NCBI GenBank assembly: GCA_030704615.1
Contig: CM060731.1
Location: 28,334,001-28,398,000 of the forward strand
Source: Takakia lepidozioides
Taxonomy: Eukaryota > Plantae > Bryophyta
Direction of reading: 5' to 3'
DNA: 64,000 nucleotides
The notes beneath the pieces are model-generated. The model had not been told where the DNA came from. It saw only the letters and a program-made list of their open reading frames with translations, and ran no database searches. The translations under genes and the position numbers were made by a program. Positions 1,024-64,000 of this stretch are shown one piece after another (the first letter of the stretch is position 1; every line of letters begins with the position of its first letter).

Positions 1024-1025
1024 CT

Positions 1026-1037: not shown

Positions 1038-1078
1038 TTAGAGTTCAGTACGTGATCGTCCTTGGGATCGGCCTCAGC

Positions 1079-10065: not shown

Positions 10066-11323
10066 ATGGGATCTCCTGCAACTTACAGAGCAGTTCTCTT
10101 GCTAATAGTGACCTGCATACTGCGCATATGCGCGGCGCAGACATGTGGAAGCCAGGCAGGGGGTGCACTGTGTACCAATAATCTGTGCTGTAGTCAGTAT
10201 GGTTACTGTGGAGCTAGCAGTGCGTACTGCGGTCTTGGCTGCCAAAGCGGCCCGTGCACTAACCTTAGCGCCCCCCAGCCACCCCCTCCTCCTTCACCTC
10301 CTCCTTCGCCTCCTGCTCCTCCTCCTCCTCCTCCGGCCGTTGTTTCTCCTACTCCTTCGTGTGGAGTGGGAAAGGTAATCACTAGAAAACTATTTGATCA
10401 GCTATACCCCAATCGTAACAGAACATTCTACACATATGACGCATTTATCGTTGCAGCCAATTCATACACCTCATTTGGAACAGCCGGCTCCAGAAATGAC
10501 ATAAGGAGGGAGATTGCTGCGCTCAGCGCTCACTTTCAGCAAGAGACAGCAGGTAAGGCCCCTATCCGCTATCAATCGAAGGCCTCTTTCGTCCGAAGTG
10601 CTAGGGTACCTGGTCTCTGGAATCTAAACATAATTTCCGAAGTGCACAGTTTCCTGAATGTAGTCTGAGTATCGACTTTGTTGTGGCAGGTTTATTCTAC
10701 GTGGAAGAGATTGATCAATCCTTCAACTACTGTGACAGCACCAGCACTCAGTACCCTTGCGCTCCTGGGCAAGCTTATTTTGGACGAGGTCCTCTGCAAC
10801 TCTCGTGGTCAGTAGCAACCTTCAAACCCAATTCTCAGAAGTTGGTGCATGGAAGTTGCAAGGTAGATTTGACTTTCAAGCCGGTCCAGATGTTTATAAT
10901 GCACACTGTTTAATTGGAACCTGCATTGCCTGACATGTTTTTTGTTACAGGAACTTCAACTACGGAGCAGCAAGTTCCTCTGTTGGCGCTAATCTCCTCG
11001 CTCAGCCCTACCTAGTGGCACGAGACCCCGTTATTGCTTTCAAGACGGCTCTCTGGTTCTGGACGACTCGCCATGGTGCCCAAGAACCCTCTTGCCATGA
11101 GGCGATAATTGGCAAGTGGAAACCCACAGATGCGGATAAGGATGCTGGTAGGTTACCAGGATTCGGGGTCACCACCGACATCATCAACGGTGGCATCGAG
11201 TGCGGCCATAAAAATGCAACTGCGCAGGAATCAAATCGCGTGAAGTACTACAAACAATATTGTGCCCAGCTGGGCGTGCATCCGGGAGATAATCTCGACT
11301 GTAGATGCATGAAGCCCTTTTAA
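10066..11323 (+). CDS. GH19 chitinase with signal peptide, hevein (CBM18) domain and Pro-rich hinge; exons 10066-10552, 10690-10807, 10951-11323
   Basis: [12 protein letters not shown]...CCSQYGYCG hevein domain; [11 protein letters not shown] catalytic glutamates; [11 protein letters not shown]|NFNYG; [14 protein letters not shown] introns keep the frame; TATAAA at about 10013. Confidence 0.95.
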
Positions 11324-22533: not shown

Positions 22534-24326
22534 TCTTGATGGTGGCTGAGTTTTTGGTAACACCACTCAAGAATTGCCAAATCCCGTTATTGTGTTAGAA
22601 ATTATTTTGCCTAGAACGGACTAGGATAATGGGAAACGGATTAGGGTTCTCCCTAGATCCGAACCTAAAGCAGACATGGTCAGAAAAGAGGCTGCCTTAT
22701 AGAGTTAAAAGCCGTGGCTGCTCCTCTCATTTGGAAGAGCAGGAAGGAGCTAAAGGAGAAGTTGCCTTAGTGCTGAACTCACTTTGGCTCTTTACTTTCA
22801 AGTGCTGCTTAGTATGACAACACAGGGCTGAGTGTTGCTGTAGCAGCATAAACAATGCTTCGCTTTGCTGATGCACTGTTGCAAGAGATACTACCACCCT
22901 CCACCCACTGAGCTATCTTTTCTTTCTATCTTGCGATCCATGAATGTCTCCTAGCTAAAGTGGACATGGATAACAACTGTCAAGCCATTTAAGCCTGGAA
23001 TTCTATGCAAATCACTAATCTATTGGTTGGTGGGTGTGCACAATGGGGCCAGGTGAGGCGGCTTCACTTGCATTAGAGGGTAGTCAGGCTGGGATTGTGA
23101 AAGGAAAGAAGGGCATAAGGGAAGCCTTCTTGCTGCCTCATACTTGGTGTGGAATGGTGTTGAGAGTAAACACATGTTTGTGCTAGTCTAAAAAAATTTG
23201 ATGGACTGTTGGAAGCCTACCTTGAAATAGGTAATGGCTACATGGATTCACACACTAAGACATCCAAGGGGCTCAAGTATGCCCACGTAGTGCATTATGA
23301 ATTTGCAGAACTACTTCAAAGAACCAATCCCCTGCTGAGCTCTGGCTTTTCTCATAGCTGCAGTTTTGACTTCTACGTAACCTCTACTAGAAATATTCTA
23401 GTATGAATCTATGAGGGTTTGTACTCTACCTGTGGAAACCATTGAAGGATCTTATGGTCAAAGCCTTGCTTGCATATGATAACACCTTATGTAAGCAATT
23501 GCAAGATTTATAAGCATACATGTTCAAAAATCTGAGTTTTGAAGGACTTGTGAGGTTTATATGTCATTGCTGGCGTCTATACTGAAGGAGCTGAAGCATG
23601 TCTAGATGTATGATGTCGTTAAACCTCTCTCTCTCTATCTCTCACCTCAGCTTTTACAGAGGCGGCACCTCCCAAATCACCCATGTGAATCTCGCTGCCT
23701 TCAGTATCCATCATAATGGCCACTGAATAGCCCTTCTCGGAATTCAGCTTTCGCACATTGCGGATGACTTGCCTGTGCCAGTCACGCGTACCATGACACA
23801 TATTCAAGCGAGCTACGTTCATCCCCCCCATAGCGAGCGCCTCCAATTGCTCAAACGCGCACGTTGCTGGTCCTATGGTGGCAATCAGCTTTGTTCTTCT
23901 GGTGCTGCGGAATCCATTCTCCTTAAGCTCCGCCTCAGTTACGGCATCTACTTCGATCGCGGAGGAGAACAAAGGTCTTTCACCTGCCTCCTTCTTGATC
24001 TGTACCAGACCATTTGTGAGGGCTCCATAAGCTGCATCAAGCACACCTGCGTGCGCATCGCTCGTTCCCCCAGCAATTATTGTTTCTCTTTGCGGCTGCG
24101 GTACCCCGCGTCGAATTCTTCCCTTGCCCAATCTGCTCGAACCCTCCCAACTCACCCTTGCAGCCAGGGTGCACACCGGGCCCACAGGTCTAAGCGAGAT
24201 GCAGCTCCTGGTGCTGCACCCAAGAGCCAACCCTCCAACCCCTCCTCCATGAAATGAAAGCACCCCCTGCGACCACGACAGGGCTGATGAGGCCGAGAGC
24301 ACCTGCAGGTGCATTGCCTGCGCCAT
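16645..24326 (-). CDS. PKP1: Plastid pyruvate kinase alpha subunit; exons 24326-23646, 20285-20195, 19883-19690, 19379-19258, 18991-18748, 17514-17280, 16961-16645 (627 aa)
   Basis: Transit peptide, then [83 protein letters not shown]. Exons sum to 1884 nt in frame; intron 3 needs a GC donor. Confidence 0.95.
18040..18560 (+). mobile_element. Old 3' fragment of the RTE-like LINE family in pyruvate kinase intron 5
   Basis: Homologous to 21665-22190 and to the reverse complement of 33058-33630; ends ...GGCCACAAGGCTACAGCAAAC. Confidence 0.8.
21289..22470 (+). mobile_element. 5'-truncated RTE-like LINE with a second tandem 3' end, in pyruvate kinase intron 1
   Basis: Matches the reverse complement of 33058-34115. 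The 3' terminus ...CGTCTTATGAGTACATTCT occurs twice (about 22190 and 22470); flanked by (TC)n. Confidence 0.85.
22469..22528. repeat. (TC)n microsatellite
   Basis: Uninterrupted TC run at the LINE 3' end. Confidence 0.95.
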
Positions 24327-29454: not shown

Positions 29455-29993
29455 CGCTGCTAGTCAGGCAGACAGGAAGTAACTAAGATCGCTCGCTGTA
29501 TGTAAGCAGTAACCTAGGGCATCACCTCTTCTCTCTTCACCTTGTGAGGCGGATATTCTTCTTCAGACTTACATAAGTTTCGTATATCTACACGCATATA
29601 AATACCTATACACTGTGGCCGCTTTAGGATATAGAGATGGTCTCAAGGAAAACCCACAAAAAGATATCGAGGATGTTGGTTGGCCACAACGCCCTATCCA
29701 ACCAACAATTGCGAACACACAACACACCTTGAGATTGTCGTCGGGAAACATTTTCAACCGTTGGGCAAGTTCGATTTCCCGTCATTTCCCATCAACTTCT
29801 TTACACCATAATATTTGGTTTTCAGAGGGCTCGGAACTTAGCCAGTATCTTAACCCGGGAAATAGAAGAAAAATTGTGACAATCTCGCAATCAACTGCGC
29901 AGTCAGAGTGAACAGCAAAGAAGGTGCTGCAGCGTTGATCGAGTGCCTGCTTTTGCACCATGTGGAGGAGTTTAGGGCTGCATTGGAGCATCC

Positions 29994-32900
29994 ATGGCAG
30001 CGCACACAACGAGCATGGCACCCCGTCAGCCAGGCTTGTCGGGGTGCCTTCACAAGCCTGGACAGGGCCTGAAAGTTTCAAGGAGGTGTGGGTCGTACTA
30101 TCTATACGCCCCTAAGCACAGTCCCAACAGCATTACGTTGAGATTTGATTCAAACCGTTTCAAGGCAAGGGCGGGAGAGTGGAGACCGGTGGTGGAGGAC
30201 GAGGCTTGGGGACAGAGGCATGAGCAAGGGGGTGACCTGGAGGTGGAGGAAAATGAGGGCCCGGGTACCCCGGTGGCCACATTCAGCAAGGAAATTACTA
30301 ACCCAGTGCACCTCATTGACTGTCCGGGCCGTGCCATGGAGATCAAATACTTGGAGACTGGAAGATTTTTCGAGAAGTCCAGCGTTGATGTGCCCAAGAC
30401 AGCCACTACATCAGATGTTCCGAAATGGTTAGCTATTTACCCTACCGTAAGAGACACGAGGGATGGGCTACAACGGGTCTTGTTACGGGTAGTGAAGTGG
30501 GCGAGAGGGATGGTGTTTGGGTGGTCTAGTGTGAATGTCTAGAGTAGAGATCGACGAGGTTCAGTGATTCCAGGTAGTAGCGGATAGAATTTGTGCATGG
30601 GTGGGTGCGTAATTCAAATAAGGCCGAGAGTGCTATTTTAGCCATAATGGAGGAGATGGGTGGAATTGTCATAGGTTCTGAATTACGTGAACTTCCATTG
30701 TCCCCGGAAAGTCAATAGAAATCTTACATCTTTGCAGTGTGTAGGTGTGGAGATAGTTGATTAAGATCAGGTGGGATGTCAGGTTGGAGTTGGATACTCT
30801 GGTTGAGAGTACAAGGCACCAGGTGAAGAAAAGGGACCAGATTCATGTTACAGGACATCTGGTTGTGGGTGTTTGTGATGTTTACAATGACATAAGCTCA
30901 ATTTCAAAAAGGTGTAAAGGTAATACTTTCATTTTCCATCTGTCATCCCTCTCTCAATTGAGGGGCTAGACAGGTAGACCCATGTGTCAGAAAATAGATG
31001 AGGAAGTGCATCGGTTCCTTCATCCCACCAACATTTTGCCTCCTCTTAGCAGTCTTTCTGCGGAGTATTTTTCTTCAATAGTGCACAGAACCTTTGCTTT
31101 GTAGCCACACTCTCTCTTGGTTTACACCCTTTTGGACCAGAATGCACCTTAAACATAGGCCTGTTGGTTGAAGAGTGGGGAATGTATGTGGCAGTTAGTG
31201 AGTAGTGGAGTGTGGGATGGAAGTGGGTAGGGCCTGATGTGTCTTGTGGGAGACAGGTGGTTGTAGGCACAGTGAGCTTTGTAGGATCAGAGAATCCAGG
31301 TTATAATTTCTCTACTCTTTCAGCTCCCTCCAAAGTGGGCCAAGGAGCGGAAGGAGTGTGATGAGTCTCTCTCTGCCCTTCAATGTCCTAGAGAGGTCGG
31401 TGGGAGAGACAGGCTTAGTGAGACCTCAGAAAATCTCTACTTGAATGCAAGTCGAAGTGATTTATAATCATCTCTCACTTACCCCTAGCTAGCTCAAAAC
31501 ATAGAGGACACCAAGGTAGGCAGAAAGAAATGTACTTGGCATCCACACAGGCAATTCGGTTGAAGTTCAATGTAGAATTCTGCAATTACATGAGCCAAGC
31601 AGGGAAAAGGAAATCGTTGGGCCTGATCTTTGGACTTGCTCCCGACTTGCTCCAGGGGTGGGACTTACTTTTAAAATGATGTCATTTCTAGTTTTTAGAA
31701 GTATGGTGATACTAGTTTTCATGCATTGTATCAGTCTGCTCTCCCCTCGTTTCCTTCCTCCATTCTCCGTGCCCTTCTCTGCAGTCGAAGTTCAGGGGGG
31801 CTCTATGGCCCCAGTGCTTTGGTATTTCTTCAAGTTCATCTCTCTTCGGCCCCTCTCAATGTGCTGAGAACATTGTGAAAGCTTTTGCTAGTATCTGCAT
31901 CCCTAAGCCAAATATTTGTTTTCAATGAGAAGGCCCTGCCACTTTACAGTAGCCAACATTGTCCCAGTGAATGATATATTTGGGAAACTCGTGGATAGAG
32001 CAGCTCTGCATGCATTGGTAGTCTTGTGATAGAATCTCCTCACCAGTGGTCTGGTTTCTGTGGCGGATGCCTGAAAGGACATGCACCCTACTGTCCATTT
32101 TCTGCTTTGTAAGTTTGGCTTCTGGTTATTAACTTCTTACTGCTAGTTGGATTGCAGGCGAATTCTCAAAAAGTCCAAATACAAACCTGGAGAGGCTTTG
32201 GAAGGAACATTTTTCAAAACCCAGTTTGTGGTGGGAGAGTCAAGGCAAAAAGGTGAATGCCTGGTATGTCAAAGCAGAAGCAGAGAATAGCTGCACAGAA
32301 CGGAAATTGATGATAGTGCCCACTATCTATCCCTCCTTCTCTCCCTCTCTGTTTGCCTTCATTTTCTCCTCAACAGTGATTGGAAGTGCACCCACAGTCA
32401 CATGTCTCGCATCTGTTGCACAACAGAGGTCTAGTAAAGTAGTCCAGCGCAGCCTTATACTTTGTAGTAGTAGGGCAATGCCACCATTTTAGTTAACACA
32501 CACTGGTTGTCCGTTGCTGTGCACACAAGCTATAAAAAGTCTGGGTTATCTTATATATACTCTATAGGTTTGAAACCCCCAATCGGCTTGGAGGGGGAAT
32601 TATCACGTCAGCTAAGAGGAGATGCATCATGACATGCAATTTACTGCATTTTCTCCTTTGGCACCTGAGTGGGAGTTGCAATTGGCCGCACAACCACAGT
32701 TACAAGTGTCATTTCTAAGGTGGAGGGCTTACCCTAGCAGTGTTGATATAAACACTGTGCTTTCTGCAATGATGTCACTGCCAGCCTTCAATCAACAGTC
32801 AACTGGCTGCAATTGTAATGTGTCAGTGACTGTGCATGAGGAGCATGACAATTCAGCCTACTTCTATGTTGGTAGGTTAAACCCCTTTGTGAACCGTGGG

Positions 32901-35150
32901 ATGTGTAGTATCCAGGCAAGGTTAGTCTTGGTGAGATATGTCATACTGAACTCGAGCTGTGCTGTGTAAATTATGGTTTGTCATTGTCAGCTACTTAGAG
33001 TGAGGATGAACTTTTGAATTTTTGTTGCGGATATCAGGATAGCTGAGCAGGAATAGAATGTACTCATAAGACGACGTTTGCCATAGCCTTGTGGCCATTG
33101 ACCCCGCGCTCAGTTTGAGCGGAACACAAAGGGACAGAACCTACCTTTGTCAGGGGCTGACGCCGGCAGTAAGACTTACCTTGGAATAAACAATCGATCC
33201 GGTTTTCCAGATATCCTCTAGAAATCCCTTTACCCAAGCATCAACCTGCTGTGTGTGGTTTGCCCAATAACTAGCTGCAAAAGGGCCTGGGGTTTTGGCT
33301 CAGCCTCAAGACTTTCAAAGTTGGTAAACAGAGGTACAGGCACAATTCCCTTGATAGATTTGAAGAGAGCGTCTCTCTGGTGCGAGAACCCCAGATAATG
33401 AATCCGAAAATGAATATTGTCTTCAGGTTGCCCACACAACGGGCAATTGCACTCTCCCTTTCCTCTCTGCTTCTGTTTGCTGTTCAAAGGTATGGTTCCT
33501 GCCCTGAGTTTAAATTTCAGTCTAGTGCCGAGAGTGGGTACACCCTTGAGGTCATCCATGATGTCCTCCCCCATCTCACAGACTGGAGACAAGTTCAGGG
33601 AAGTTTTCTGCCTAACTTGATTTTCATCAGACAATTTCCTGGCAACTTGAGGTCATCCATGATTTCCTCCTCCATGTCACAGACTGGAAACAAGTTCAGG
33701 GAAGTTTTCTGCCTAACTTCATTTTCATCAGATAATCTCCTGGCAACAGACATGGCTTTGGAGACTACAGCCTGTAAGTCAGATGTATCCAGCAGGGTCA
33801 AGACTTGCGGACTAAGATTCAGATCCTTGAGAATCTCTTCTACTCTCTTCCGCCAGGATTTAGCCTGTTTGACAGGGCGATCCTGCTTCCAAGGTATAGA
33901 GTTGATTAACTTAGGATCTCTGATGTTGGACACATGTTGCAGCTGACCCCACCATCTAACCTTGAATTCATCTCCTCGGGAGCTTAAGGAAGGGATGCCA
34001 AACTCACCCCAAACATCAATAAGCACCCGCACTTGAATGGATTCTAGAGACTTAGCCTGGTTGGAGTTATCAACCCATATCGCAGATTCGTGCGTACTCC
34101 AAGATAGGTCCGATAACGCGACAAAGCATGGTTTTTTTTACCTCAGAGTTGATCCCTCTGCAGTGGAAAGATTTAGTGAGACCCAGCGCTTTGCGCTTGC
34201 CAGTTTGAACAACTTTCTGAATATGTGCATCCCAATTACAGTTGGAGGAAAACTCAACGCCGAGGTATGTGTAGGCAGGGAGGACCGGGATCTCTTGGCT
34301 TCCCCACTGGCACTTGAGATCACCCCCTCTCCTGACGTTAGCCTCTAGCCCCCAAAGGTCAAAGTATCTCTTGGTGCAATCAATCAATTCCTGGAGAGTG
34401 GAAGGAGTCTCCCTATGCCTGCGAAGTCATCCGCAAACATAAAGGCTGGTGTGGTGGCATCACCCACCCTTAACCCAAATCCCTCACTTTCCACATCCTC
34501 GATGAGTTGATTGATGAAAACATTGAAGAGCAGAGGGGAGAGGGTACATCCTTGAGCTACACCTTGGTCTATGTCAAAGAAGTTAGACTTCTGTCCATTA
34601 ACAATGACACAACTTTTGGTGTGAGCATACAAGTTATGGACAACTCTCCACATCTTTCCCTTGATCCCACATGACCAGAGTCGGAGCCATAGACCGTCTC
34701 CCCACACTGTGTCATAAGCCTTGGCTTGGAGTGAAGATATGATTTACACAGCCCCTGTTTCTCCGGAAGCCAGCTTGGCCTTCGTGGAAACAACCTCTAG
34801 ATTCCAGATCAAACTCGAGACGAGTACTTATAACTCTGCAAAATATCTTGCCAACTGCATTGAGGAGCGTGATGCCTCGGTAGTTCCCCGGCTCTTCTCT
34901 GTCACCCTTCTTGTGAAGATTGACATTGAGCAGGAATAGAGTATGGATGCAGGTCTTGATCAACCACAAGAGCACAAAGCAGGCACTTTGCATTGAGAAT
35001 CACAAGGAAGCCGCATGGGTCAAAGGACAATTGGAGAAGCTTGAAGCAGATAGGACAAATTCTGCTGCAAACCCTGGTGGAGGGAGATCGTCCGGGCACT
35101 TCCAGTATGATAGCCCCTCTTTCACAGATTCAGACCTCCTGGATTTCTGA
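29994..35150 (+). pseudogene. OSB: Degenerate OSB-family organellar ssDNA-binding protein gene; exons about 29994-30427, 30783-30919, 31257-31515, 32158-32252, 34950-35150
   Basis: SSB-like segments FSKEITNPVHLI..GRAMEIKYLETG, W|LELD..HQVKKRDQIHVTGHL and VVVGTVSFV. PDF-motif halves ERLWKEHFSKPSLWWE and HKSTKQALCI..WVKGQL. Exon 2/3 phase mismatch, TGA-TGA in exon 3, LINE inserted before the last exon. Confidence 0.8.
33058..34926 (-). mobile_element. 5'-truncated RTE/RTEX-like LINE with a 14-bp TSD
   Basis: RT motifs KKGD..PGNYRGITLL, QAGFR, GVAQGCTLSPLLF, FADD and YLG; C-terminal CPLCG..H knuckle. TSD TGAGCAGGAATAGA at 33044-33057 and 34927-34940; internal ~101-bp tandem duplication at 33545-33747. 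Confidence 0.92.
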
Positions 35151-35548
35151 TTCTTCCCTGTTAGTTGCATTGGGTTACTGCTAAGTACTTCTTCTGGTAG
35201 TTGTTACTTCTGTGCCTGGAAACCGTAATGAGCAGAAAAGGCCTTTGTTGGGGGCTGCAGAGGAGGTTACACACAGCATGGGACACATGTTTTTGGTCAG
35301 TGTGAAAGATCCCAGTTGTCAGTGCTTTTTGAAATTTCATGCTTAAAAGGATAGATGGTATTGCAGCCATGTTGAAGTTGGTAAATCTGTTGAAAGCATG
35401 GGCCACCAAGGTTAACCAACACAAAATCCTGTTAATGGGTAGCAAGGAACCTGTCCTCATACAGTGATCTTTCTTCAAAGTAAGTAGGAGCATACAAGAT
35501 GGTCTGAGTTTGAGCGTCAAGGTTTGTAAAAGTTTCAGTTCATGCAGG

Positions 35549-38179
35549 ATGGCGGGTTTGAACCAGACACAGTTGTTTGAATCAGGCACTTCCTCCATGA
35601 CAACTGCTTTTGAAAGGGGACCAAGAGAGGGAGTCACCATGAACTCTTTTGGCAGTCGCAGGGACGTGAGGAGTCTATGTAGGACAGGACAACTAAAGAG
35701 GGCGCTGTATATTTTGAAGCAAGGAGGCATTGCAGCAGACTCTAAAACATATGTATGTCTCTTACACGAGTGCATCAAGATGAAAGGCTTAACAGAAGGT
35801 AAGCAGGTGCACACCCACATTATTCAAAGTGGATTCAAGCCAAACACTTTCCTGCTCAATACCCTTATCAACATGTATGCCAAGTGCGGAAGTGTAATTG
35901 ATGCACGTCTAGTGTTTGACAACATGCCTGAAAGAGATGTGTTTACTTGGACTATGATGATGGGAGGATATGCCAAGCATCAGTACGGTAGGGAGACCTT
36001 GAAAATGTACAAGGAAATGATACAGGAAGGGGTGATGCCCAACAATGTCACATTTATTTGTGTTCTTAAGGCATGTGCCAGCCTGGCAGCCCTGGAAAAG
36101 GGAATGGATGTCCATGCTGACATCATTAAAGCTGGGATAGTGCCAGATATCATTCTGGAGAACACCCTTGTCGGCATGTATGCCAAGTGCGGGAGCATAA
36201 AGGATGCGCGTGCAGTTTTCAATAATATGGTTAAGCGAGATGTGGTCTCATGGAACGCTATGATCGCCGGGTATTTTCAACATGGCCTTCATAGGGAGGC
36301 CCTGCAACTATTTGAAAAAATGCAACAAGAAGGCATAAAGCCAGATGTCGTGTCATGGAACGCTATGATTGCAGGATATTCTCAGCATCGGCGTGGTAGG
36401 GAGGCTTTCAAGATCTACGAGCAAATGTTACGGGAAGGGGCAACACCTGACATGGTCACATTCATTTGCATTCTCAATGCATGTGCAAGCCTGGCAGCCC
36501 TGGAAAAGGGCAAAGAGGTCCATGCTGACATTATTAAAGCTGGCATTGGTTCAGATGTTATTCTGGATAATACCCTTGTTGACATGTATGCCAAATGTGG
36601 GAGTGTGAAGGATGCACGTCAAGTGTTTGATAATATGGCACAACGAAATGTCGTCTCATGGAACGCAATGATCACAGGATATTTGCAGCATGGGTGTGGT
36701 AGGGAGGCTTTGGAGGCCTATGAGAAAATGATACAGGAAGGGTTGATACCTGACAAGGTCACATTTATTTGTGTTCTAAATGCATGTGCCATGCTTGCAG
36801 CCCTGGAAAAGGGTGAAGAGGTCCATGCTGACATTGTGAAAGCTCAAATTACACCGGATGTCATTCTGGAGACTGCCCTGGTTGACATGTATGCCAAATG
36901 TAGGAAAGTGAAAGATGCTCGTCGAGTGTTTGACAATATGGTTCAACGAGATGTGGTCTCATGGAATGCAATGATCGCAGGATATTCTCAGCATGGGTGT
37001 GGTAGGGAGGCTTTGGAAACCTATGAGGAAATGACACGGGAGGGGGTGACACCAGACAAGGTCACATTCATCTGTGTCCTCAATGCTTGTGCGAGCTTGG
37101 CAGCCCTGGAGAAGGGCAAAGAGGTCCATTCTGACATCAAGGAAGCTCGACTTGCACCGGATACCATTCTGGAGACTGCCCTAGTCAATATGTATGGCAA
37201 ATGTGGAGGCATGAAGGATGCACATCAAGTGTTTGCCGAAATGGCTGAACGAGATGTGGTCTCATGGAATGCAATTATCGCAGGGTATGCTCAACATGGG
37301 TTTGGTATCGAAGCCCTGCAAGTATTTGAACAAATGCAACAGGAAGGCTTAAAGCCAGACAGTATCACCTTTATCTGTCTTCTCTCTGCTTGTAGCCATG
37401 TAGGCCTAGTGGATGAGGGCTCTCACTATTTCAATTCCATGAGCCAAAATCATGGCCTAACTCCTACCGTGGAACACTTTGGCTGCATGGTGGACCTTCT
37501 TGGCCGTGCAGGGCAGTTGGAAGAGGCAGAGGACTTCATCAACAAAATGCCAATCGAGCGAGGGGCTCCGGTGTGGGGGGCCTTGCTTGGTGCCTGCAGA
37601 CTTCATGGCAATGTGGTGATAGCAGAACATGCGGCAGAGTGCATTCTGAAGTGGGATCCACAGGATGGTCCAACTTATGTGATGCTATCAAACATCTATG
37701 CCGCGGCTGGCAGGTGGAATGATACAGCACGGGTGAGAAAAATAATGCAGAACAGAGGTGTTACAAAAGAGCCAGGGCGCAGCTGCATTGAGGTGGACAA
37801 CCAGGTGCATACATTCATTGGAAATGACAAATTGCACCCACAAATTGAGGAAATATATGCTAAGCTGAAGAGATTGTCAGGGCAGATGAAGGCAGCTGGA
37901 TATGTGCCTGACACTCGCTTTGTATTGCATGATATGGAGGACAAGGAAAAGGAGTTTTCTCTTTGCCACCATAGTGAGAAGCTGGCCATTGCTTTTGGGC
38001 TCATCAGCACACCCCAAGGGACACCTCTCCGCATCATCAAGAACCTTCGGGTGTGTGGTGACTGTCACACAGCCACCAAGGTCATCTCGAAGATTGTAGG
38101 GCGGGCAATTGTCGTACGGGATGCCAACCGGTTTCATCACTTCCAAGATGGGGCTTGTTCTTGTGGGGACTACTGGTGA
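35549..38179 (+). CDS. PLS-class PPR protein with E1-E2-DYW deaminase domain (organellar C-to-U editing factor); true N-terminus may be on an upstream exon
   Basis: 18 P/L/S motifs, E1/E2, PG box KEPGRSCIEV, HSEKLA, CGDCH and terminal DYW; uninterrupted ORF. Confidence 0.96.
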   Translation: MAGLNQTQLFESGTSSMTTAFERGPREGVTMNSFGSRRDVRSLCRTGQLKRALYILKQGGIAADSKTYVCLLHECIKMKGLTEGKQVHTHIIQSGFKPNTFLLNTLINMYAKCGSVIDARLVFDNMPERDVFTWTMMMGGYAKHQYGRETLKMYKEMIQEGVMPNNVTFICVLKACASLAALEKGMDVHADIIKAGIVPDIILENTLVGMYAKCGSIKDARAVFNNMVKRDVVSWNAMIAGYFQHGLHREALQLFEKMQQEGIKPDVVSWNAMIAGYSQHRRGREAFKIYEQMLREGATPDMVTFICILNACASLAALEKGKEVHADIIKAGIGSDVILDNTLVDMYAKCGSVKDARQVFDNMAQRNVVSWNAMITGYLQHGCGREALEAYEKMIQEGLIPDKVTFICVLNACAMLAALEKGEEVHADIVKAQITPDVILETALVDMYAKCRKVKDARRVFDNMVQRDVVSWNAMIAGYSQHGCGREALETYEEMTREGVTPDKVTFICVLNACASLAALEKGKEVHSDIKEARLAPDTILETALVNMYGKCGGMKDAHQVFAEMAERDVVSWNAIIAGYAQHGFGIEALQVFEQMQQEGLKPDSITFICLLSACSHVGLVDEGSHYFNSMSQNHGLTPTVEHFGCMVDLLGRAGQLEEAEDFINKMPIERGAPVWGALLGACRLHGNVVIAEHAAECILKWDPQDGPTYVMLSNIYAAAGRWNDTARVRKIMQNRGVTKEPGRSCIEVDNQVHTFIGNDKLHPQIEEIYAKLKRLSGQMKAAGYVPDTRFVLHDMEDKEKEFSLCHHSEKLAIAFGLISTPQGTPLRIIKNLRVCGDCHTATKVISKIVGRAIVVRDANRFHHFQDGACSCGDYW

Positions 38180-39574
38180 GACAAAATTCTTCCATGCCAA
38201 GGAAGTATCTGGCCCTTCCCATGGGTCGTCCATAGTAGCATCACCACCAAATTTCTAATAGAGTCCTTCACTCACTTTGTTTTCTAATTATTTTGTTACG
38301 TTGTTACTGGGTGAACAGCAACATACAACTTTCCCATTGTATTCTACTACGAACCAGTGGTCTTTAGACTATGAACCATTATTTAACTCCACCTGTCAGA
38401 GGTACTTTCCTTGTCAGAGTGGGCTTTAGAGTACAGAGGGTCCTAGACCCAAATAGATGTAAGCCAATGAATGGGGTTTCCCAAGCCTCTTTAGACTGCA
38501 AGATGTGGGGCACCTGGCCATGTATTTTTCCCAAAATTTTAAAGGAGTGGGCACTCCAAATTTGGAAGTTACCTCAACCTTGGGGTGAGTACCCAAATAT
38601 ACAAGCCAGGTAGTTGGGATGCCTTGGACAATATTTTGGGGCTGAAGAGAAGAAGTGGCTATGAAAGGACTCCTGCCCCTCATGTATGACTGTTGGTTAT
38701 GGGATGTTACATGCACTTCTTGTCCCAAGCCTCTGTCTTCCTCTACTCTCCTGCACACTTTGCCTTTATACTCCCTCTAAAAAGGGGTACCACTGCTGGC
38801 TGGGGGCAACCCAAATGACATACCCCAAATGGCACTATTTAGGATTTGGGAGTACTCAGTCTGTGCTGGTAGGGCTAAAGCCAGCCTAAAATGTCAATAC
38901 TTTTGTAAACTTGAGGTTTACATAAATAGCGTAGGATCATTAGACACGTCGGGTTAGTACTATGATTGAGAAAAAAGCATACACTTGACTACAATTTAGT
39001 GTGCAGAATTTTTACATCCACCCATCCATGCCATGAATTGTCGCTGGGGGGGCGCAGACAACAATTGCCCTAAGCTGTGATGGAGAAGACAGGTGCTTAT
39101 CAACATCCATTGGGTCGCATATGGTGGTCGCATGAGTGTCTATTATTCTTACAATCTACGAAGAACAAGAACCGTCGCACCTACTAGCTCATTTGCATCA
39201 AATCTTAAGAATGGTGTACAGTCATTGTGTTGTGACTAACTACATTAGCGGTGAAGAAGCTAATAAGAAGCTAATAAGGCTTCAGGCGAACCATGCCCTG
39301 TAATACCAATTCATTTGTGTCAAATGCACATGTGGATTGGTTATGATTACAATTAGTGGTGAAGAAGCCCTAGCCCAATGAGTGCCTTATAGCCACTGAA
39401 GGCTCGTTCAACTTTCAAAAAACTTCTCATATAATCGGTGGTGGATCATAGGCAATTCAAAAGCCTACAAAGGCAAAGCAAACATGCAAAAGCGTAAAAT
39501 TTCAGTCCTCCATGGATTGCTGCACTGCAATACCATGCTTATAGTACAATCTACCAGCACTAAAGCACTCTGAG

Positions 39575-41754: not shown

Positions 41755-42300
41755 GCAACGGCGTCCACAATCGCCAACAGGTCCGAATCCCTCCAATGGC
41801 AGTTTAGCCACTAGTTCTCCAAAGCATGGTCTTATCCCTGCTTGAGATCTGCATTGTCTCTCTAGCACCTAGGAGTATCCGTTAGGCCACTTTAGTCCTA
41901 GCTTTGGTGCCACGGTTTCATAGTGTCTTGTTTCAAAAGGGCTCGTTCTCCTTAGGGCTCCAGCCCTATTCCCCTCCCAAGGCTCAGTATAGTCTACACT
42001 CGACTTGGGTTGGCTTATTTTCTTTTGTCTCTCCATCAAACAGTTGCAAGTCCTCTTCGTAAGAGCTGATAACTCTATATTTTAGGCTAAAACGCCTCTG
42101 AAATTCTGTGGTCGGAGACAGGCCCAGGTAAATGGCTCTCAGTTACTGTTCTTAGTTATCCGGCACAGTCTCCGTGCGATCAGCCTCATGGCAGCCTTGT
42201 GGCACTCTAAGGGTTTTAATTTTTTTTTCCCTTCAAATAATTCCAATAAAGCTTCCAGGGCCAGACCCCTGTTTATCAATAATAATAATAAATAAATAAA
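41755..42300 (+). mobile_element. Possible retroposed (LINE 3' end) fragment
   Basis: GC-richer block in an AT-rich context, ending with AATAAA and an (AAT)n/A-rich tail; no diagnostic protein motif. Confidence 0.35.
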
Positions 42301-42869
42301 ATATTATTCAAAATTTAACTTTTATACAACCAGTCACTTATAACTACACCATGCTCTTAAACAAGTATGTTATATATATATATATATATATATTCAAAGA
42401 TCTATCACACAACATTGAGTCTCACTTTCATTTTCTAAACATATAAAGATTGGACATGTAACAATCTGATTCTAAGTATTTCAATCTATTTTTTCTTTCT
42501 ACTGTAATTAATTAAGAGAGTCTGACTATAGGCAACATTGTCAAAAACTGCGGAAGATGTACAGATATGTTTGAAGAGGCTAAGGGAGATCATGAGAGAC
42601 TTGAATACTCTAAGAGAAAAGAATATTTCCTAAGGAAAATAGAAAAAATATAAACTAATATAATAAACGTATCAACTTTGGTCATTATATTTATGAATCA
42701 CATATACTACTTATTGGTATGTACCGACAAAATTGGTAGGTTGTCATCATTTATTATAATTAAAAAAACTTTATTTTCGATAAACGTTCATACATCCATT
42801 TGTAATGCACTGACATCTTTTTTTGAAATAAACCTTTATGTTAGTATCTATGTTAAAAATTGAAAAATA

Positions 42870-44442
42870 GTAAGATATTATTTATAATTGCCCTTACGAC
42901 TCCTTAGGATTGCCCTAAGGAGTCCTAAGGTGAGGAGAAAATGGAAATATGTAAATTATTATTTATTATTGCCCTTAGGACTGCTTAGGGCGACCCTAAG
43001 CAGTCCTAAAGGGGGGGGGATGAAAACATATATATTATTATTTATAATTACCCTTGTGACTTCTTAGGACAGTCTTAAGGAGTCCTAAGAGGAAACAAAT
43101 GGAAAGACATAAATATTTGCCCTTAAGACCCGTTTAGGCAGCCTAAGGGGTTATAAGAGGGGAGAATGGAAACATATAAATTATTATCTATAATTGCCCT
43201 TAGGACTCCTTAGGGCGGCCCTGAGGAGTCCTAAGAGGGGAAAAATAGAAATATATAAATTATAGGAAAATAAAAACATATATATTATTATCTCAGCTCT
43301 CACACAAGAGGGTTAATGGCAGAGATCCTTCATCCTAAGGAGTCCTAAGAGAAGAAAAATGGAAAGACATAAATAATTGCCCTTAAGAGCCGTTTAGGTA
43401 ACCTAAGGAGTTATAAGACGGAAAAAATGGAACATATAATTATTATCTATAACTGCCCTTAGGATTGCCCTAAGGAGTCCTAAGAGGGGAAAATAGAAAT
43501 ATATAGTCCTAAGGGCAAATATAGATAATAATTTATATGTTTCTATTTCCCCCCTCTTGTAACCTCTTAGGTTGCTTAAACGGGTCTTAAGGGCAATTAT
43601 TTATGTCTTTCCATTTTGTAATTATAAATAATAATTTATACGTTTCTATTTTCCCCGTCTTATAACCCCTTAGGCTGCCTAAACGGGTCTTAAGGGCAAT
43701 TATTTATGTCTTTCCATTTTTCTTCTCTTAGGACTCCTTAGGACTGTCCTAAGAAGCCCTAATGATGATTATAAATAATAATTTATATGTTTTCATTTTT
43801 CCCTCTCTTAGGACTCCTTAGGGCCGCCCTAAGGAGTCCTAAGGGCAATAATAGTCATAAGAAGGGGAAAATTAAAAGATGTAAATTATTATTTATAATT
43901 GCCCTTATGACTCCTTAGGACGGCCCTAAGGAGTCCTAAGAGAGGGAAAATGAAAATATACAAATTATTATTTATAATTGCCCTTAGGACTCTTTTGGGC
44001 CGCCCTAAAGAGTCCTAAGAAGGGGAAAAATAAAAACATATAAATTATTATCTTTGCCCTTAGGGCCGCCCTAAAGAGTCTTAAGAAGGGGAAAAATAAA
44101 ACATATAAATTATTATCTATAATTGCCCTTAGGACTCCTTAGGGCTCCTAATGAGTCCTAAGAAGGGGAAAATTGAAAGATGAAAATTATTATCTATAAT
44201 TGCCCTTAGGACTCCTTAGGGCGCCCTAAAGAGTCCTAAGAGTGGGAAAATAGAATGATATAAATTATAATAGCCTCATAAGAGGGGAAAAATGGAAAGA
44301 TGTATTTTGTTATTTATATTTGTCATTAGGACTCCTTAGGGCGGCCCTAAGGAGTCCTAAGAGGGGAAAATAAAAAGATGCAAATTGTTATTTTTTATTG
44401 CTCTTAGGACTCCTTAGGGCAACCCTAAGGAGTCCTAAGGGG

Positions 44443-44445
<3 letters not shown>
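42870..44445. repeat. Tandem array of ~79-bp units (about 20), each with a 37-bp palindrome; block 43506-43853 inverted
   Basis: Unit TTATTATCTATAATTGCC-CTTAGGACTCCTTAGGGC-G-GCCCTAAGGAGTCCTAAG-AGGGGAAAA. Confidence 0.92.
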
Positions 44446-44478
<33 letters not shown>

Positions 44479-44699
44479 ACTTTAAGAATCACATGTACTA
44501 TTTATTTGTAGGTGACAATATTTATTACAATTAAAACAAGATTTTGTCTTCGATAAACGATCATACAGCTATTTGTAATGCACCGACATCCATTTTTAAA
44601 TTAACCTTCATAAGTTAGTACCTATTCAAAAAGTGTGTGGGATAAGGTTAATAGATAGCAACTTTTCATTATGTTTTCATCCAATTATTTTATTTTTCA

Positions 44700-45910
44700 T
44701 TCTTTCTTTTTAGACTGTACCTCATTTTTCCCCCTATAAGTATAGAAAACGATGATCATTTTCTTCTCTTTCTTCCGCAAGTTGTTTGCAGACAATAGAT
44801 CTCTCAATTTTTCTCTTTTACCTTCGTTTTTGTGTTTCTTCTTTGTTTCTGTTGCTTGTTTATGTTTCTCTATCCTTTTGGTTCTTTGACAATGTTTTTT
44901 AGTTCTTTTTAGTAGTTTCATTTGTCTTTGTTCTTAACTTTTGGTTCTCTGTTTATGTTTCTTTCTAATCTCTATTCTTTGTCTTTCTGTGTGAGTTTTC
45001 GATAGAATAGAACTTTCTCTTCATTTTTCTCTTTCATTTTGTTGTCCTTTGAAAACTCTATAAATATGCAGAACGAGGATCATTTCTTTCACTTTCTTCT
45101 GCAAACAAGCTTTTTGTATAGAATAGAATTGTCTCTGAGTTTTGCTCCTTTGCCATCGTTTGTGTTTCTTCCTTGCTTCTGTTGTTTGTTTATGTTTCTT
45201 TGTTCTTTCGGTTCTGTGGCAAAATAGAACCGTCTCTTAGTTCTTCTTAGTAGCCTTCATTTATTTTTTTCTTTCACTTTTTGTTCTTTGTTTATGTTTC
45301 TTCCTTGTCTCTGTTCTTTGTATTTATATGTGAGTTGTTCAGCGGAATAGAACTGTTTATTCATTCTTTTTGTTTCGTTTTGTTTTCTTTCCTCCTTGTT
45401 TATGTTTCTTCTTTGCTTTTGTTGTTTGTTTATGTTGCTTTGTTCTTTTGGTTCTGTGGCTAAATGAACTGTCTCCTAGTTGTAGTTCTGAGTAGCTTTC
45501 ATTTGTTTTTTTCCTTTACTTTCTGTTCTTTGTTTATGTTTCTTTCTGATCTCTATTTTTTGTATTTCTGTGTGAATTGTACAGCAAAATAGATATTTTG
45601 ATTGTTTCTTTTTCTTCGTTCTTTCTCTTTTTCGTTTTGTTTCTTTCCTCTTCGTTTGTCTTTCTTCTTTGCTTCTGTTGTTTGTTTATGTTTCTTTGTT
45701 CTTTCGGTTCTGTAGCAAAATAGAAATGTCTCCTAGTTCTTGTGAGTAGCCCTCATTTATTTTTTCTTTCACTTTCTATCTTTGTTTATGTTTTCTTTTT
45801 TATCTCTGTTCTTTGTATTTTTGTGTGAGTTGCTCAGCGAAATAGAAGTTTCTCTTCTTTCGTTCTCTTCATTTTTTCTCTTCGTTCTTTCTTTTTCATT
45901 TTTTTTTTTT
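44700..45910. repeat. T-rich diverged tandem repeat (about 4 units of 240-350 bp)
   Basis: Recurring TGTTTATGTTTCTTTGTTCTTTCGGTTCTGT..AAATAGAA..TCTC.TAGTTCT..AGTAGC.TCATTT. Confidence 0.8.
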
Positions 45911-47079
45911 TTTCTCCTAACATATTTGACACACTACCAAAAACACTATCTTATATTTCCAAGAAATCATCAAAATTCATTACATTGTGATTATGCCACT
46001 TGAATGTTACATCATAATCTATAGTGTATATGATATTCAAGCATGATATCAATATAGTATATACAACTTAGAGATTATACATATTTAATTATAATCAGAA
46101 TTATATATATAGTAAAAATAAGTATATGAAAAATGAATATTTATATTATATGAAATAAAAATGTAATAATAATTAAATGTATTTTAAAATCTAGCTATAA
46201 TCTAATGACGTCGTTACATAAATCAACTATCATTCTATCCATCAACCAGTCAATTATCATTCCATGTATTATCATAAATCAATCATTATCAGTTACAATC
46301 ATGTGTTATTTTTACTTACTACATAATTATTTATTCATATCACTTTATCTTATCATTACATTTTCATATTTCAAATTTAAAATCTTAAAAATTTACATTA
46401 TTTTTATAAATGAACATACTAAAATATTTATTTAAAAGAATCAATGTTTTTATTTATTTAAACATAATGATGTATATTATGTATTATAAAAATAAATATA
46501 TTATCAATTTATATCATGCTTTCAATGTCAGATTCATCATTCCAATTTAAATCTAATAAATCAATTTATCTATCATATTACATCTCAAAAACTTCAAATA
46601 TACTATTTATATTAACGAATTTTATTTTATTTTATTTTATGTATAATAAATTAAATATTTATTATATAATATGTAATAAATATTCTAAATATAAATAAAT
46701 ATATAATGTATAATGTATACTACTGTATTATATCATGTTTTCAACCTCAGACTTCATCATTTCAATAAATTCAAAATCCATTCAATCAAATTATTTATCA
46801 TATTATATTTCAAAATCTCCAATTTTTTTTTTTCCCTTTATGGTTAATCTTTAAGGCCTTTGGGCCATAATTTTGTATGCTATAATGGATAGCTATAAGG
46901 GTTTGAATCCCTATACAATTTTTATTTTTTTGTGAAAACCAGGGCTGAAACCAGTCCATTCTGATATAGGAGTTCATATTCGTATATTGTATAATGTGTA
47001 TATATCCATATGTATACATCAAATATGACATGTATAATATTGATCGTAATCTGATATACCAATTCAATCAGCAATAAAA

Positions 47080-47900
47080 AATCGTTAGAGTGATTCTAAG
47101 AAACTCTTAGAGTGAATGTGTTGTTTTTTTAATCACTCTAAAAAATCCTTAGAGCGGCTCAGAGCGGCTCTAAGCAAAAAGCAATATAGTTTATTCCGTT
47201 TTCTTGCTCTAAGTAATGCTTGGATCAAATGTGAATAGCCATTTAGATTTTTTTTGTTTTCCCGCTCTAATAAATCCTTAGAGCGGCTCTGAAGGATCCT
47301 TAGAGCAAATACAAATAGCAAGTTAGCTTTATCTGTTTCCCCGCTGTAGAAAATCCTAGAGCGGCTTAGAGCGGCTCTAAGGGATCCTTAGTGCGAATGT
47401 AAATAGCAATTTTTTTTTTAATTATTTTCTTATTCTAAGTATTACTTAGATCGAATGTAAATAGCAAATTAGTTTTTTCTGTTTTTCCACTCTAAAAAAC
47501 CCCTAGAGCGGCTCTAAAGGATTCTTAGAGCGAATATAAATAGCAATTTAGCTATTTATGTTTTCCCGCTGTATGAAATCCTTAGAGTGGCTTAGAGCGG
47601 CTCTAAGGGATCCTTAGAACGAACGTTAATAGCAATTTAGCTTGTTCTATTTTCCCAATCTAACAAATCCTTACATTGGCTTTAAGGATATTAAGGGATT
47701 GTTAGAATAAATGTAAAAAATATGTTAAGGTTTATCTTCTTCGTCATAGTTGACCGATTTGTTTTCCCGCGCTATGAAATCCTTAGAGCGGCTTAGAATG
47801 CTATAAGGGGTCCTTACAACGAACGTAAATAGCAATTTAGTTTTTTTTATTTTTTCCAATTTAAGAGACCCTTACATTGGCTCTAAGGGATCATTAGAAT
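47080..47900. repeat. Second tandem array (~80-bp units) with palindrome CTTAGAGC-G-GCTCTAAG
   Basis: Recurring AAATCCTTAGAGCGGCTCTAAGGGATCCTTAGAGCGAATGTAAATAGCAATTTAG..TTTCCCGCT. Confidence 0.9.
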
Positions 47901-48164
47901 AAATATAAAAAATATGTTAGGGTTTTTCTTCTTGGTCATGGTTGACTGTTGAGGCCGTATGACACCCTTTGAGATTTACCTCTTCTTCCCCTTCAATAAT
48001 TCAACTATTAACAATATAGTTATTTGGGCTAAAAATAATGTGAGTTTTTGGCTAAAATATATTAGGGTTTAGCCAGAACTTGTCGACGTGGCCTTATGTC
48101 TTGCCGAGAAACAAAAACTTGGCACTAGCTGGCATCCTAAAGATTGGAAGGTGAGACCTATTAA

Positions 48165-60185: not shown

Positions 60186-63100
60186 TTTCCTCCCCCACGG
60201 TCCAAGGTTGATGTCCCCATCAACGCTTCTTCCGCTTTTGAGGTCGTCCTTCGAAAGCTGCAACCGCCTCGGATGCGTTCTTAATTTCTGCGGCACGCAC
60301 CCAAAATGTCTCCACATGATGATAGCCCTTCCATTTCACGAGATACTCCATTTCTCGATTATTGAACCTCCTCGACTTAAGCAATGCCTCCACCTTGTAC
60401 TCAGGTTCATTTTCATGATCCAACAGCACAGGTGGCGGATGCAACACTTGATGCCGATTCGGACGCGCCTCATCTTCGAAGTAAGGCTTCAAAATGGAGA
60501 CGTGGAATACCAGATGCACCTTGCTGTTTGCCGGCAGCTCCAATTCATACACATCCTCATTCATAATCTTCCGGATGCGAAAGGATCCTGCATACGGAGG
60601 TACGAACTTCGGACTCACTTCCGGAGGTAGTCGAATTTTTTTTATGTTCAACCAGACCTCCGTGCCTGCCTCAAACTTGACTTTCCTCCGCTTCCGATTT
60701 GTCTGCCGTTCATACCGTTTCCTAGCTTTGGCGATGTTGTACTTTGCGAGCTTCAACAAGCGCTCGTGTTCCTCCAACACCGTTGCTGCTGCCAGTTCCT
60801 CAACGTCTTGGGCAGTCCAACTTGTCGGCACTAGAGGTTCTTTTCCATAGACTAATACGAAAGGGGAAACACCCGTTGCGGAGTGTTTTGTGTTATTATA
60901 ACAGAACTCTGTCGCGTCCAAGTGCTCCACCCAGTCTGATTGGTCCGCCGACATGAAATTCCGCAAGATCTTATTTACCACGGAATTCACCTTTTCTGTT
61001 TGGCCGTCCGTCGTAGGTCGGAAGGCGGTGCTCATCTTGAGCCTCGTCCCCATCTTCCTCCAAAGTGCCCTCCAAAATTTATTCGTAAACTTTGGATCGC
61101 GATCCAAAACAATATCCTTTGGGAGTCCATGATGCTTGAAGACGTGGACGAAGTAAAGTCGCCCCGTCTCCTGTGCCGTTGCCATCTCCTTGGTAGGGAT
61201 GAAATGGCCCATTTTATTGAACCTATCCACCACAACCATGATTGCATTGAATCAGCGGCATAACAGTCATGAAATCCATCGAGACATTTTCCCAAGACCC
61301 CTCTGGAATCGGCAAGGGTAACAGCCCCGCTTGCTTTTTGTACTCGCTCCGGTTTTGTTGGCATGTGGTGCATGTCTTGACATACTCCTCGGCCTCCTCC
61401 CTCAGTTTGGGCCAAAAATACTCTTTCTTCAAGAGTGTTGCGGTGCGCTTGGCTCCGCCGTGGCCCGCAAGCGGACCATCATAGCATTCTCTTAAGAGAC
61501 TATCTCTGATCCCTCCCTTCGGCACGTAGAGACGCTTTTGCTTGTACCGGAGCAGTCCATTTTGCAAGTGGAACTGCAATTTAACCCCCATCCTCAAGTC
61601 CCGCATCATGGACTTCGCCATCTCATCCTTCCGGTAAGCCTTCCGGATCTTCCTTTGGAGTGCCGTCTCGCCCCTGTACACCATCATGAGCTGCTGCTTT
61701 CTACTTAAAGCATCGGCCACCACTTTGTCCCGTCCCGGTTTGTACTGGATATCCACGTCGAATAGTGTCAAAGTGTCTTGCCATCTAATTTGTTTTGGGG
61801 ACAACTTAGGCTGCGTGGCAAAATACTTCACCGTGACATTGTCCCGTCCCGGTTTGTACTGGATATCCACGTCGAACAGTGCCAAAGTGTCTTGCCACCT
61901 AATTTGTTTTGGGGACAACTTAGGCTGCGTGGCAAAATACTTCACCGTGACATTGTCCGTGAACAACTTCACCGGGTTGGAACCAATATAGTGGCGCCAA
62001 AGCTCAAGGCAATGCACCACCGCCTTCATTTTTTTCTCGTGCGTAGGCCACCGTCGCTCCATTTCATTCATTTTCTTACTTTCGTAAGCCACTGGACGTC
62101 CATCCTGCATGAGTACACCTCCAATCGCGAAGTCCGACGCATCCGTATGAATCTCAAATGGGCGGTCGAACTCCGGGATTTTCAGGACTGGAGCTTCCGC
62201 CATCTGCTGCTTCAACTCGGCAAAAGCTTGGCCATAAAAGGTGTTTCATACCCAGACTTGGATTTACACAGGAGGTCTGACAGCGGCCCCGCGATCTTGG
62301 CGAAATTTCTCACATACTTTTGGTGATAGGAGGCGAGTCCTAAGAATGATCGCACTCCTGGGACCGAAGTCGGAGGCTCCCAGTCCAAGATTGCTCTCAC
62401 ATTTCTGTCATCCATTTTGATCCCATCCTGTGTAATCACATGCCCCAAGAACTCCACTTTTGTGACCCCGAATTCGCACTTTGAAGCTTTGGCATACAGC
62501 TTCCCTTCCCGCAATTTCTGGAACACCCTTTTTAGGTGCTCCAGGTGTTCTTCCTTTGTTTTCGAGTACACCAAGATGTCGTCGATGTACACGATCACAA
62601 AGTCATCCAACCACTCTTAGAAAAGGCTGTTCATTAGCGTGCTAAAGATCGCGGGTGCGTTGGTGAGCCCAAAAGGCATCACAAAGAACTCGTACGAACC
62701 ATATCTTGTCTTGCATGCGGTCTTCTCTTCATCTCCTTCCGCCACTCGAATTTGATGATAGCCGGAGCGCAAATCGATCCGGCTGAAATACTTCGCTCCT
62801 GCCAACCGATCAAAAAGGTCGTCGATCCTTGGCAAAAGGTACCATTGATAGTCACCTTATTCAGAGCCCTGTAATCGACACACATCCGCAGCGTCCCATC
62901 CTTCTTGTCTGCGAATAGCACCGGGGCCCCGTAAGGTGACTTACTCGGCCGGATGTACCCTTTTGACATTAGATCTTTGAGCTGAGTTTTCAGCTCGACC
63001 AACTCTCTGTGGCTCAACCGGTAGGGCGCCTTGGCAGGCGGCTCCGATCCCAGTATCACCTCAATCTTGTGGTCAACTCCCCTTCGCGGTGGCAAGCCGC

Positions 63101-64000
63101 TTGATAAATCCTCCGACATCACATCCTGGGTATTTCTCCAAAATCCCCTTGATCCAATCTGGGCTCGGCTCCCCATCGCCTTCTTCCTTCACTTGTCTTA
63201 CATAAAGCAAAAACTGGGGCTCGTGTGACTCCTCCACGGCCCACCTTGCTGACAGAAGGTTTATTCGCCCTCCCACGGGATTGGGCGTTTCCGACACTCG
63301 TAAAACTTCGCCACCATTCCCACACGGTCGCGTGACTACTCTCTTGCGGCCATCTATGACCGCTCCGGATCTGCTCAAAAAGGTCATCCCCAAAATGAGA
63401 TCCACTCCATCGATCTCGCAAATGGTGAAGTTCTCACGTCCCTCCCAATTCCCGAGCTGAAGAGGAACATCGAACGCCAACCTTGTCGCCAATTGTGGTT
63501 CTCCTTTAGCAGAACGCACCTCCATAGAGGCCCCCACATCACTTGTCGGGAGTCCCAGCTTCCGTGCCGTTGCCGGTGTCATGAAGGAGTGCGACGCTCA
63601 TGTGTCCACCAACAAGGACACGTTTGTTCCGGAAATTATCCCACTCACAAACAATAACTGACTCCCTTTGCGCAGGGCGCCAGTCTTCTGATACAACTCA
63701 CAAGAGTAGTTGGCTACCTTGCAAGTCTTGGCAACCACCGCCTCCACCAAGCGGCTAATGGAATCCTCGGACAACTCCGTGGTTGCTCGAGTCATGTTCA
63801 ATTGTCGGGGTTTCGTGCACTTTTTAGCTATGTGCCCGGGTTCCCCGCAATTAAAGCACACTCCATCGAAGGTCGCCTTCTGTCCGCCATAAGCTGCTGC
63901 ACCTGGTTTTCCTTTCGAGGCACCGGGTGTTGTCTTGACGTGTGAGGGCCCTCCCTTCGATTTCCATGTGTCATTGTCGCAGCGTGGCCTATCCCACTTC
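58604..64000 (-). mobile_element. Ty3/Gypsy chromovirus copy 2 (same family), degenerate, cut by the window edge within gag
   Basis: Zn knuckle, protease, RT, RNase H, integrase and chromodomain ORF pieces 63861-60220 are highly similar to copy 1; PPT at 60186-60197. Confidence 0.96.

Follow-up and report, generated by a model that had tools for sequence, protein, structure and literature searches.

An OSB-type gene spliced onto a PPR-DYW exon in the moss Takakia lepidozioides

How does the gene for an RNA-editing factor come to lie directly behind a gene for an OSB-like protein on the same strand, and are the two expressed as one? The question is raised by a locus of Takakia lepidozioides (Bryophyta) within a stretch of 64,000 nucleotides (GenBank assembly GCA_030704615.1, contig CM060731.1, positions 28,334,001 to 28,398,000 of the forward strand), which we call the window and whose numbering is used throughout. 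PPR-DYW editing factors are usually regarded as self-contained intronless genes with their own transit peptide. An earlier interpretation of this DNA, here called the sequence-only reading, had proposed that a retroposed intronless PPR-DYW gene took over the promoter and targeting exon of an OSB gene by a direct splice from exon 1, after which the remainder of the OSB gene decayed. We found that the OSB-type gene is spliced onto the PPR-DYW exon from its fourth exon, and comparison with other seed-free plants suggests that the arrangement was inherited rather than freshly captured.

The RNA data were the assembled contigs of two public runs, X1 and X2, from two studies of the same organism; we took these contigs to be RNA because they carry canonical GT..AG joints. 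The first X1 record begins at 29886, within a 5' leader on the plus strand (29886-29993) of which this position is a lower bound, and transcription starts there or upstream. Exon 1 (29994-30427) is joined to exon 2 (30783-30919), and exon 2 to exon 3 (32158-32263), through the joints 30427|30783 and 30919|32158, both of which are GT..AG and present in both runs. The remaining joints, 32263|34953 and 35104|35548, are held by a 260-nt X1 contig that matches the window exactly (record 4), and they bring in exon 4 (34953-35104) and the PPR exon (35548-38179), all on the plus strand, with removal of a GT..AG intron 4 of 443 nt (35105-35547). The left end of record 4, 27(+3) letters, is the expected k-1 overlap with the X1 contig of exons 1-3, which stops at 32265, a branch point of the assembly graph; in both runs the other branch enters intron 3. 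These joints showed that 29886-38179 is transcribed as a single unit, in which an upstream OSB-type gene is spliced onto a PPR-DYW exon. The sequence-only reading had made the PPR a downstream exon of the OSB unit, and its acceptor, 35547|35548, is indeed the one used, but the donor is 35104 in exon 4 and not that of exon 1.

The transcribed leader and exon 1 showed two further features. An out-of-frame ATG at 29960 opens an upstream reading frame of about 50 codons (29960-30115) that overlaps the OSB start codon at 29994. At position 30273 both RNA runs have T where the window has G, changing Val to Leu in exon 1; this is probably a strain or allele difference rather than editing.

OSB proteins combine an OB fold with one or more PDF motifs, and the PDF motif suffices for binding of single-stranded DNA (PMC6963530, PMC13393729). 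An exhaustive search with exon 1 led to plant SSB-domain proteins, three of which, P0002, P0004 and P0006, contain the SSB Pfam domain and matched exon 1 at 38-40% identity (E 3e-22 to 2e-12, tblastn against the window only); P0001 and P0003, from the same search, were repetitive proteins and were discarded as spurious. P0006 (275 residues) is a typical OSB protein, with an OB fold, then W-W-D-N-R..P-D-F-K-H-K and a tail ending in ..D-F. In tblastn it gave four collinear pieces that correspond to exons 1-4, with 38% identity in exon 1, 50% in exon 2 (residues 93-118) and 45% in exon 4 (residues 215-275, E 1e-8), in agreement with the earlier designation of the upstream gene as OSB-like. Exon 4 reached a local score of 99 against a shuffle mean of 23 (z 17.8). 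The P0006 alignment furthermore crosses the 35104 donor and runs to the common ...D-F-stop ending, with the stop codon at 35148-50; addition of this relic tail (35105-35150), now the first 46 nt of intron 4, raised the score from 99 to 113.

The exons divide the OSB protein in order. Exon 1 contains the start codon, a presequence-like segment, an acidic stretch and the first half of the SSB-type OB fold. Exon 2 continues into the middle of that fold (K-K-x-D-Q-I-x-V-T-G-H-L). Exon 3 encodes the first half of the PDF module (L-W-x-E-x-F..W-W-E-S-Q), and exon 4 the second half plus the OSB tail, ending in a phase-2 donor, CCA|GTATGA. As described earlier, exon 1 is open for 144 codons and ends in TG|GTTAGC in phase 2; this donor, at 30427, was confirmed in the RNA of both studies and lies at the conserved OSB position (...P-x-W). 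The basic, Ser/Thr-rich and acid-poor start of exon 1 was also found as described: its first 50 residues hold no D/E, seven R/K and nine S/T, a composition that fits a putative organelle transit peptide.

This OSB part is incomplete. Exons 1-2 cover residues 7-118 of P0006 in the alignment, the Pfam SSB domain of this protein occupying residues 45-140. For residues 119-180, with the last OB strand and the linker, tblastn found no counterpart in the window; a search of intron 2 for the missing strand gave no match at E up to 10. In the PDF signature, P-D-F is replaced by L-I-N, D-N-R by E-S-Q and the conserved Trp by Cys, so the conserved Pro-Asp-Phe is absent, as previously noted, although the module can still be aligned. 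Even at E up to 10, Pfam matched neither exon 1 nor any of the exon pieces taken singly. Word searches with exon 1 and with residues 1-110 of the PPR leader found no match in a collection from which the species' own proteins seem to be absent, and an Atlas search returned just a weak SSB lead (0.78). Taken together, the homology indicates that the upstream gene is of true OSB type: one half of the SSB-type OB fold is present, the PDF module is degenerate, and the C-terminus survives as a relic with its stop.

The PPR exon is in a different condition. Its open reading frame (35549-38179; ATG at 35549, stop at 38177-9, 876 codons) was intact, as had been stated, and so far is free of damage. Pfam profiles on it included PPR_2 (1.7e-116), PPR (9e-99), E_motif (5e-18), Eplus (3e-6) and, covered over its whole length, DYW_deaminase (9.4e-46). 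It encodes a PLS array with internal 303-nt triplet repeats, E1/E2 motifs downstream of it and a DYW domain in which the zinc-binding residues H-S-E and C-G-D-C-H are present and the C-terminus reads D-Y-W-stop. The acidic residues reported in the leader were confirmed, there being four D/E among its first 40 residues. A by-eye match between this leader (M-A-G-L-N-Q..) and a lycophyte segment (M-A-S-M-T-L-G..) was dropped when tblastn gave it no support. The only contigs that cover 35565, in the leader, are the spliced one (depth 14.1) and one with a 3-nt deletion (depth 8.9), the latter representing a second allele or a near-identical paralogue with the same leader.

Could the PPR exon nevertheless have been captured directly by exon 1? 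Several observations that gave rise to this idea held up. There are two acceptors ahead of the PPR, TTTCAG| at 35538 and ATGCAG| at 35547, the latter followed by G ATG GCG and lying one base before the PPR start codon; both are in phase 2 relative to the PPR frame, like the exon 1 donor, so that a direct splice would be in frame, and exon 1 does begin with a presequence-like segment. However, the listed joints include neither 30427->35548 nor 30427->35539, and in X1 and X2 alike exon 1 continues into exon 2. Marks of retroposition were likewise absent: no A-run occurs within 800 nt after the PPR stop, and no flanking direct repeat that could be a target-site duplication was found in 35100-39200, although such marks, if old, could have decayed. 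Relatives in other plant lineages, moreover, already have the OSB-type PDF module in front of the PPRs. We therefore regard a recent capture of the OSB promoter and targeting exon by a retroposed PPR-DYW gene as very improbable.

A phmmer search of the 120 best relatives of the PPR protein with the C-terminus of P0006 revealed PDF modules, from one to three per protein, at the N-terminus of 23 (E down to 5e-37). These 23 include the most similar proteins of all, from Diphasiastrum complanatum (53-56% identity), as well as two Calypogeia (liverwort) proteins and a Sphagnum (moss) protein. A single exon of the liverwort gene encodes both the second PDF half and all PPRs, and the fusion is therefore not an annotation artefact. 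The liverwort locus (L003) and the lycophyte locus (L004) have in common a phase-0 intron directly after W-W-D-x-R-x-x-K. At the same place and in the same phase the window has AAG|GTGAAT (32252), and the RNA has an intron there with its donor shifted by 11 nt. The lycophyte gene then continues with a 146-nt PDF exon, a phase-2 donor and the PPR exon, and the window with a 152-nt exon, a phase-2 donor and the PPR exon. In a tree of the C-terminal 420 residues, the 12 PDF-bearing sequences included all fell into one group with the window sequence (SH-aLRT 82). Because lycophyte, liverwort and moss relatives already have the OSB PDF module before the PPRs and a phase-0 intron is common to the liverwort and lycophyte genes, these comparisons suggest that the locus belongs to an old OSB-PDF::PPR-DYW fusion family found in seed-free plants and that its arrangement was inherited. 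A search for PDF remnants in intron 4 gave none, the N-termini of the family having no match in 35105-35640. A full-text search of the literature found no paper on such a fusion.

With these relatives in hand, the possibility of two neighbouring genes can be weighed. On this account the PPR has its own promoter within 35150-35548 and its own short mRNA, and the spliced chimera is noise from read-through. In its favour, intron 4 contains an isolated depth-3 contig (35240-35418), a start codon for the PPR lies one base past the acceptor, and the former OSB stop codon survives at 35148-50. But no contig bridges 35418 and the PPR exon, the contigs give no coverage of 35105-35239, and at 35565 just the spliced contig and its deletion variant were seen. 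A chance arrangement in which a PPR of the PDF-bearing clade lies 400 bp downstream of an OSB gene, in the same orientation, is also very unlikely. We consider two separate genes with read-through improbable.

Several points count against the reading preferred here, of a copy of an old fusion family that is decaying or weakly productive. The boundaries of intron 4 differ from those of the lycophyte intron, by a few codons at the donor and by about 29 codons at the acceptor, and the OSB-PPR junction may therefore have a separate origin. The support of the clade is moderate (SH-aLRT 82, unstarred), the smallest starred set comprising 31 rows, and the window sequence is sister to the PDF-bearing group in the tree rather than nested in it. 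The similarity of exon 4 to the stand-alone OSB protein P0006 (score 99) far exceeds that to the family's PDF modules (32-54). An OB fold was found in none of the 120 relatives from other species, nor within 3-8 kb upstream in the fetched loci L003 and L004. On the side of the RNA, joints 32263|34953 and 35104|35548 are supported by one contig of one run, and the exon 3 side of this contig is just 27(+3) letters long. Lastly, contigs drop minor variants; a productive minority isoform may thus exist, and the view that the transcripts are mostly unproductive, set out below, may be wrong.

Whether the fused transcript can be translated into one protein depends on the end of exon 3, where two donors lie 11 nt apart. 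The one used in RNA, CTG|GTATGT at 32263|32264, shifts the frame. From the ATG at 29994 the observed splice form is open through exons 1-3 and is then closed in exon 4 by a TGA (34957-9) that precedes the PPR ATG by 146 nt of mRNA. The in-frame fusion product expected by the sequence-only reading is accordingly not what the observed mRNA encodes: the PDF module and the PPR array are in one mRNA, and the frame from the start codon is broken by the exon 3-4 junction. The frame problem had earlier been placed at exons 2 and 3, as a phase mismatch, and the actual one is this 11-nt donor shift between exons 3 and 4; the TGA-TGA had been assigned to a third exon, presumed near 31324, that is not in the spliced contigs. 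Since the main PPR-containing mRNA has a 227-codon upstream open reading frame and a premature stop ahead of the last junction, the PPR should be poorly translated from it, and the mRNA is likely a target of nonsense-mediated decay.

The second donor, AAG|GTGAAT at 32252|32253, is in phase 0 and homologous to the donor of the fusion family. If it is used, a local frame check showed that the five exons form a single frame of 1149 codons with no internal stop; the four upstream exons are then open (273 codons) and in frame with the 876-codon PPR, exon 4 being open in the frame that runs directly into the PPR. The statement that the OSB gene had decayed except for exon 1 thus needs dividing: its OSB part does show decay, and yet all four RNA-supported exons are open and in frame with the PPR through the conserved donor.

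A fully working fusion would use this donor in a functional mRNA for a 1149-residue OSB-PDF-PPR-DYW protein, with the isoform of the +11 donor and the read-on transcripts as regulated unproductive forms. The open, in-frame upstream codons would suit it, as would the use of the same donor position and phase by the liverwort and lycophyte genes. Contig assembly, furthermore, discards minor variants, and an isoform shorter by 11 nt would collapse as a bubble; the contigs are thus unable to show it. On the other hand, the X1 contig runs unbranched through 32252 to 32265, the sole exon 3-4 junction seen is 32263|34953, and donor 32252 was not seen in the RNA contigs. The substitution of P-D-F and of the signature Trp, and the absence of any counterpart to the last OB strand, also speak against a fully working protein, which we regard as doubtful.

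Part of the RNA does not leave exon 3 by splicing at all. Read-on into intron 3 (32264-32540, plus strand) was covered by X1 record 2 (32236-32539) and X2 record 8 (32156-32490); these transcripts are unspliced at exon 3, fade by about 32600 and reach a depth of zero from 32650. Farther into intron 3 lies the remnant of a long interspersed nuclear element (LINE) on the minus strand (33055-34929, 5'-truncated, with loose ends at 33055 and 34929), corresponding to the LINE that had been reported before the last OSB exon. Pfam matched RVT_1 on minus-strand open reading frames at 34384-34707 and 34712-34993, read depth from 33055 to 34929 was at the level of a repeat, and 23 nt separate the end of the remnant from the exon 4 acceptor. 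At the 3' end of this antisense remnant (33050-33250) contig depth rose to about 32,000 in X1 and about 9,000 in X2; the LINE element, or a tail resembling a short interspersed element (SINE), is very abundant in RNA.

What would this copy be expected to do? As a member of the fusion family, its intended product would be a protein of 1149 residues composed of an OSB presequence, an OB/PDF remnant, an RNA-reading PPR array and a DYW cytidine deaminase, with the OSB presequence predicted to serve organelle import of the editor. Making it would require the conserved phase-0 donor 32252, and in the available RNA exon 3 mostly appears to read on into intron 3 or to take the donor at +11. Because the PDF signature is degenerate, the last OB strand is missing, a LINE lies 23 nt from the exon 4 acceptor and the donor is mis-set, we see about even chances that the locus has begun to decay or is weakly productive.

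That the OB-fold exons and a relic of the OSB terminus are retained fits an ancestral state of the family and a later exchange with an OSB gene alike. In the former case the locus would keep a whole OSB gene followed by a PPR-DYW exon and would yield two products, a stand-alone OSB protein ending at the stop at 35148-50 and an OSB-PPR-DYW editor made through donor 35104. We think it unlikely that this describes the locus. If it does, the locus would show how an RNA-editing family gained a targeting peptide and a single-stranded-DNA-binding module, and editing factors may be tethered to organelle DNA and edit co-transcriptionally.

In contrast to the self-contained genes usual for such factors, the editor at this locus is expressed solely as the final exon of an OSB gene. 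Among the loci inspected, only this copy retains the OB-fold exons and the old OSB stop, and because it does, it documents the route of fusion, in which the final coding exon of the OSB gene has an internal donor that is spliced to an acceptor lying a single base ahead of the PPR ATG. Should the PDF module be functional in these proteins, they would provide a physical link of RNA editing to single-stranded organelle DNA. An intact reading frame and a spliced transcript are, however, no proof that the protein is made.

Elsewhere in the window, bodies of Ty3/gypsy retrotransposons of the chromodomain type, with long terminal repeats and gag, reverse transcriptase, RNase H, integrase and chromo domains, lie at 1025-6376 (plus strand) and 60220-63582 (minus strand). 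An open reading frame at 10066-10665 (plus) encodes a chitin-binding domain and the first part of a class I (GH19) chitinase, and one at 23619-24323 (minus) has the start of a pyruvate kinase barrel domain and is probably an exon of a pyruvate kinase gene. The region 42000-48000 is very AT-rich (GC 27-34%, with a strong AT skew at 44-46 kb) compared with 42-56% GC elsewhere in the window.

The locus can be compared with four known systems. It resembles genes of OSB proteins in its presequence-like N-terminus, the part of an SSB-like OB fold that it retains, the PDF module of about 50 residues with a W-W-D-N-R lead-in (W-W-E-S-Q here), the acidic C-terminus in ..D-F and the exon 1 donor at P-x-W. 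Unlike those, it is without the last OB strand and the linker, has L-I-N for P-D-F and Cys for the conserved Trp, and its last coding exon is spliced onto the PPR exon 15 codons before its own stop. With PLS-class PPR-DYW factors of C-to-U RNA editing in organelles it shares the PLS array, the E1/E2 motifs, a DYW domain with H-x-E, C-x-x-C-H and a D-Y-W end, and a single long coding exon for these parts, but its PPR is the fifth exon after four OSB exons and not a stand-alone intronless gene. The PDF-bearing PPR-DYW proteins of Diphasiastrum, Calypogeia and Sphagnum, all uncharacterised entries, likewise have an OSB-type PDF module before the PPR array and group with it, at moderate support, in their C-terminal regions; their PDF modules are well conserved and they have no OB fold, whereas the module in the window is degenerate and is accompanied by an OSB tail and stop. 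Finally, as in conjoined or read-through chimeric genes, an internal donor in the last exon of the upstream gene is joined to the first acceptor of the downstream coding unit. In contrast to such genes, the same combination of modules recurs in distant plant lineages, which argues for inheritance rather than sporadic read-through.

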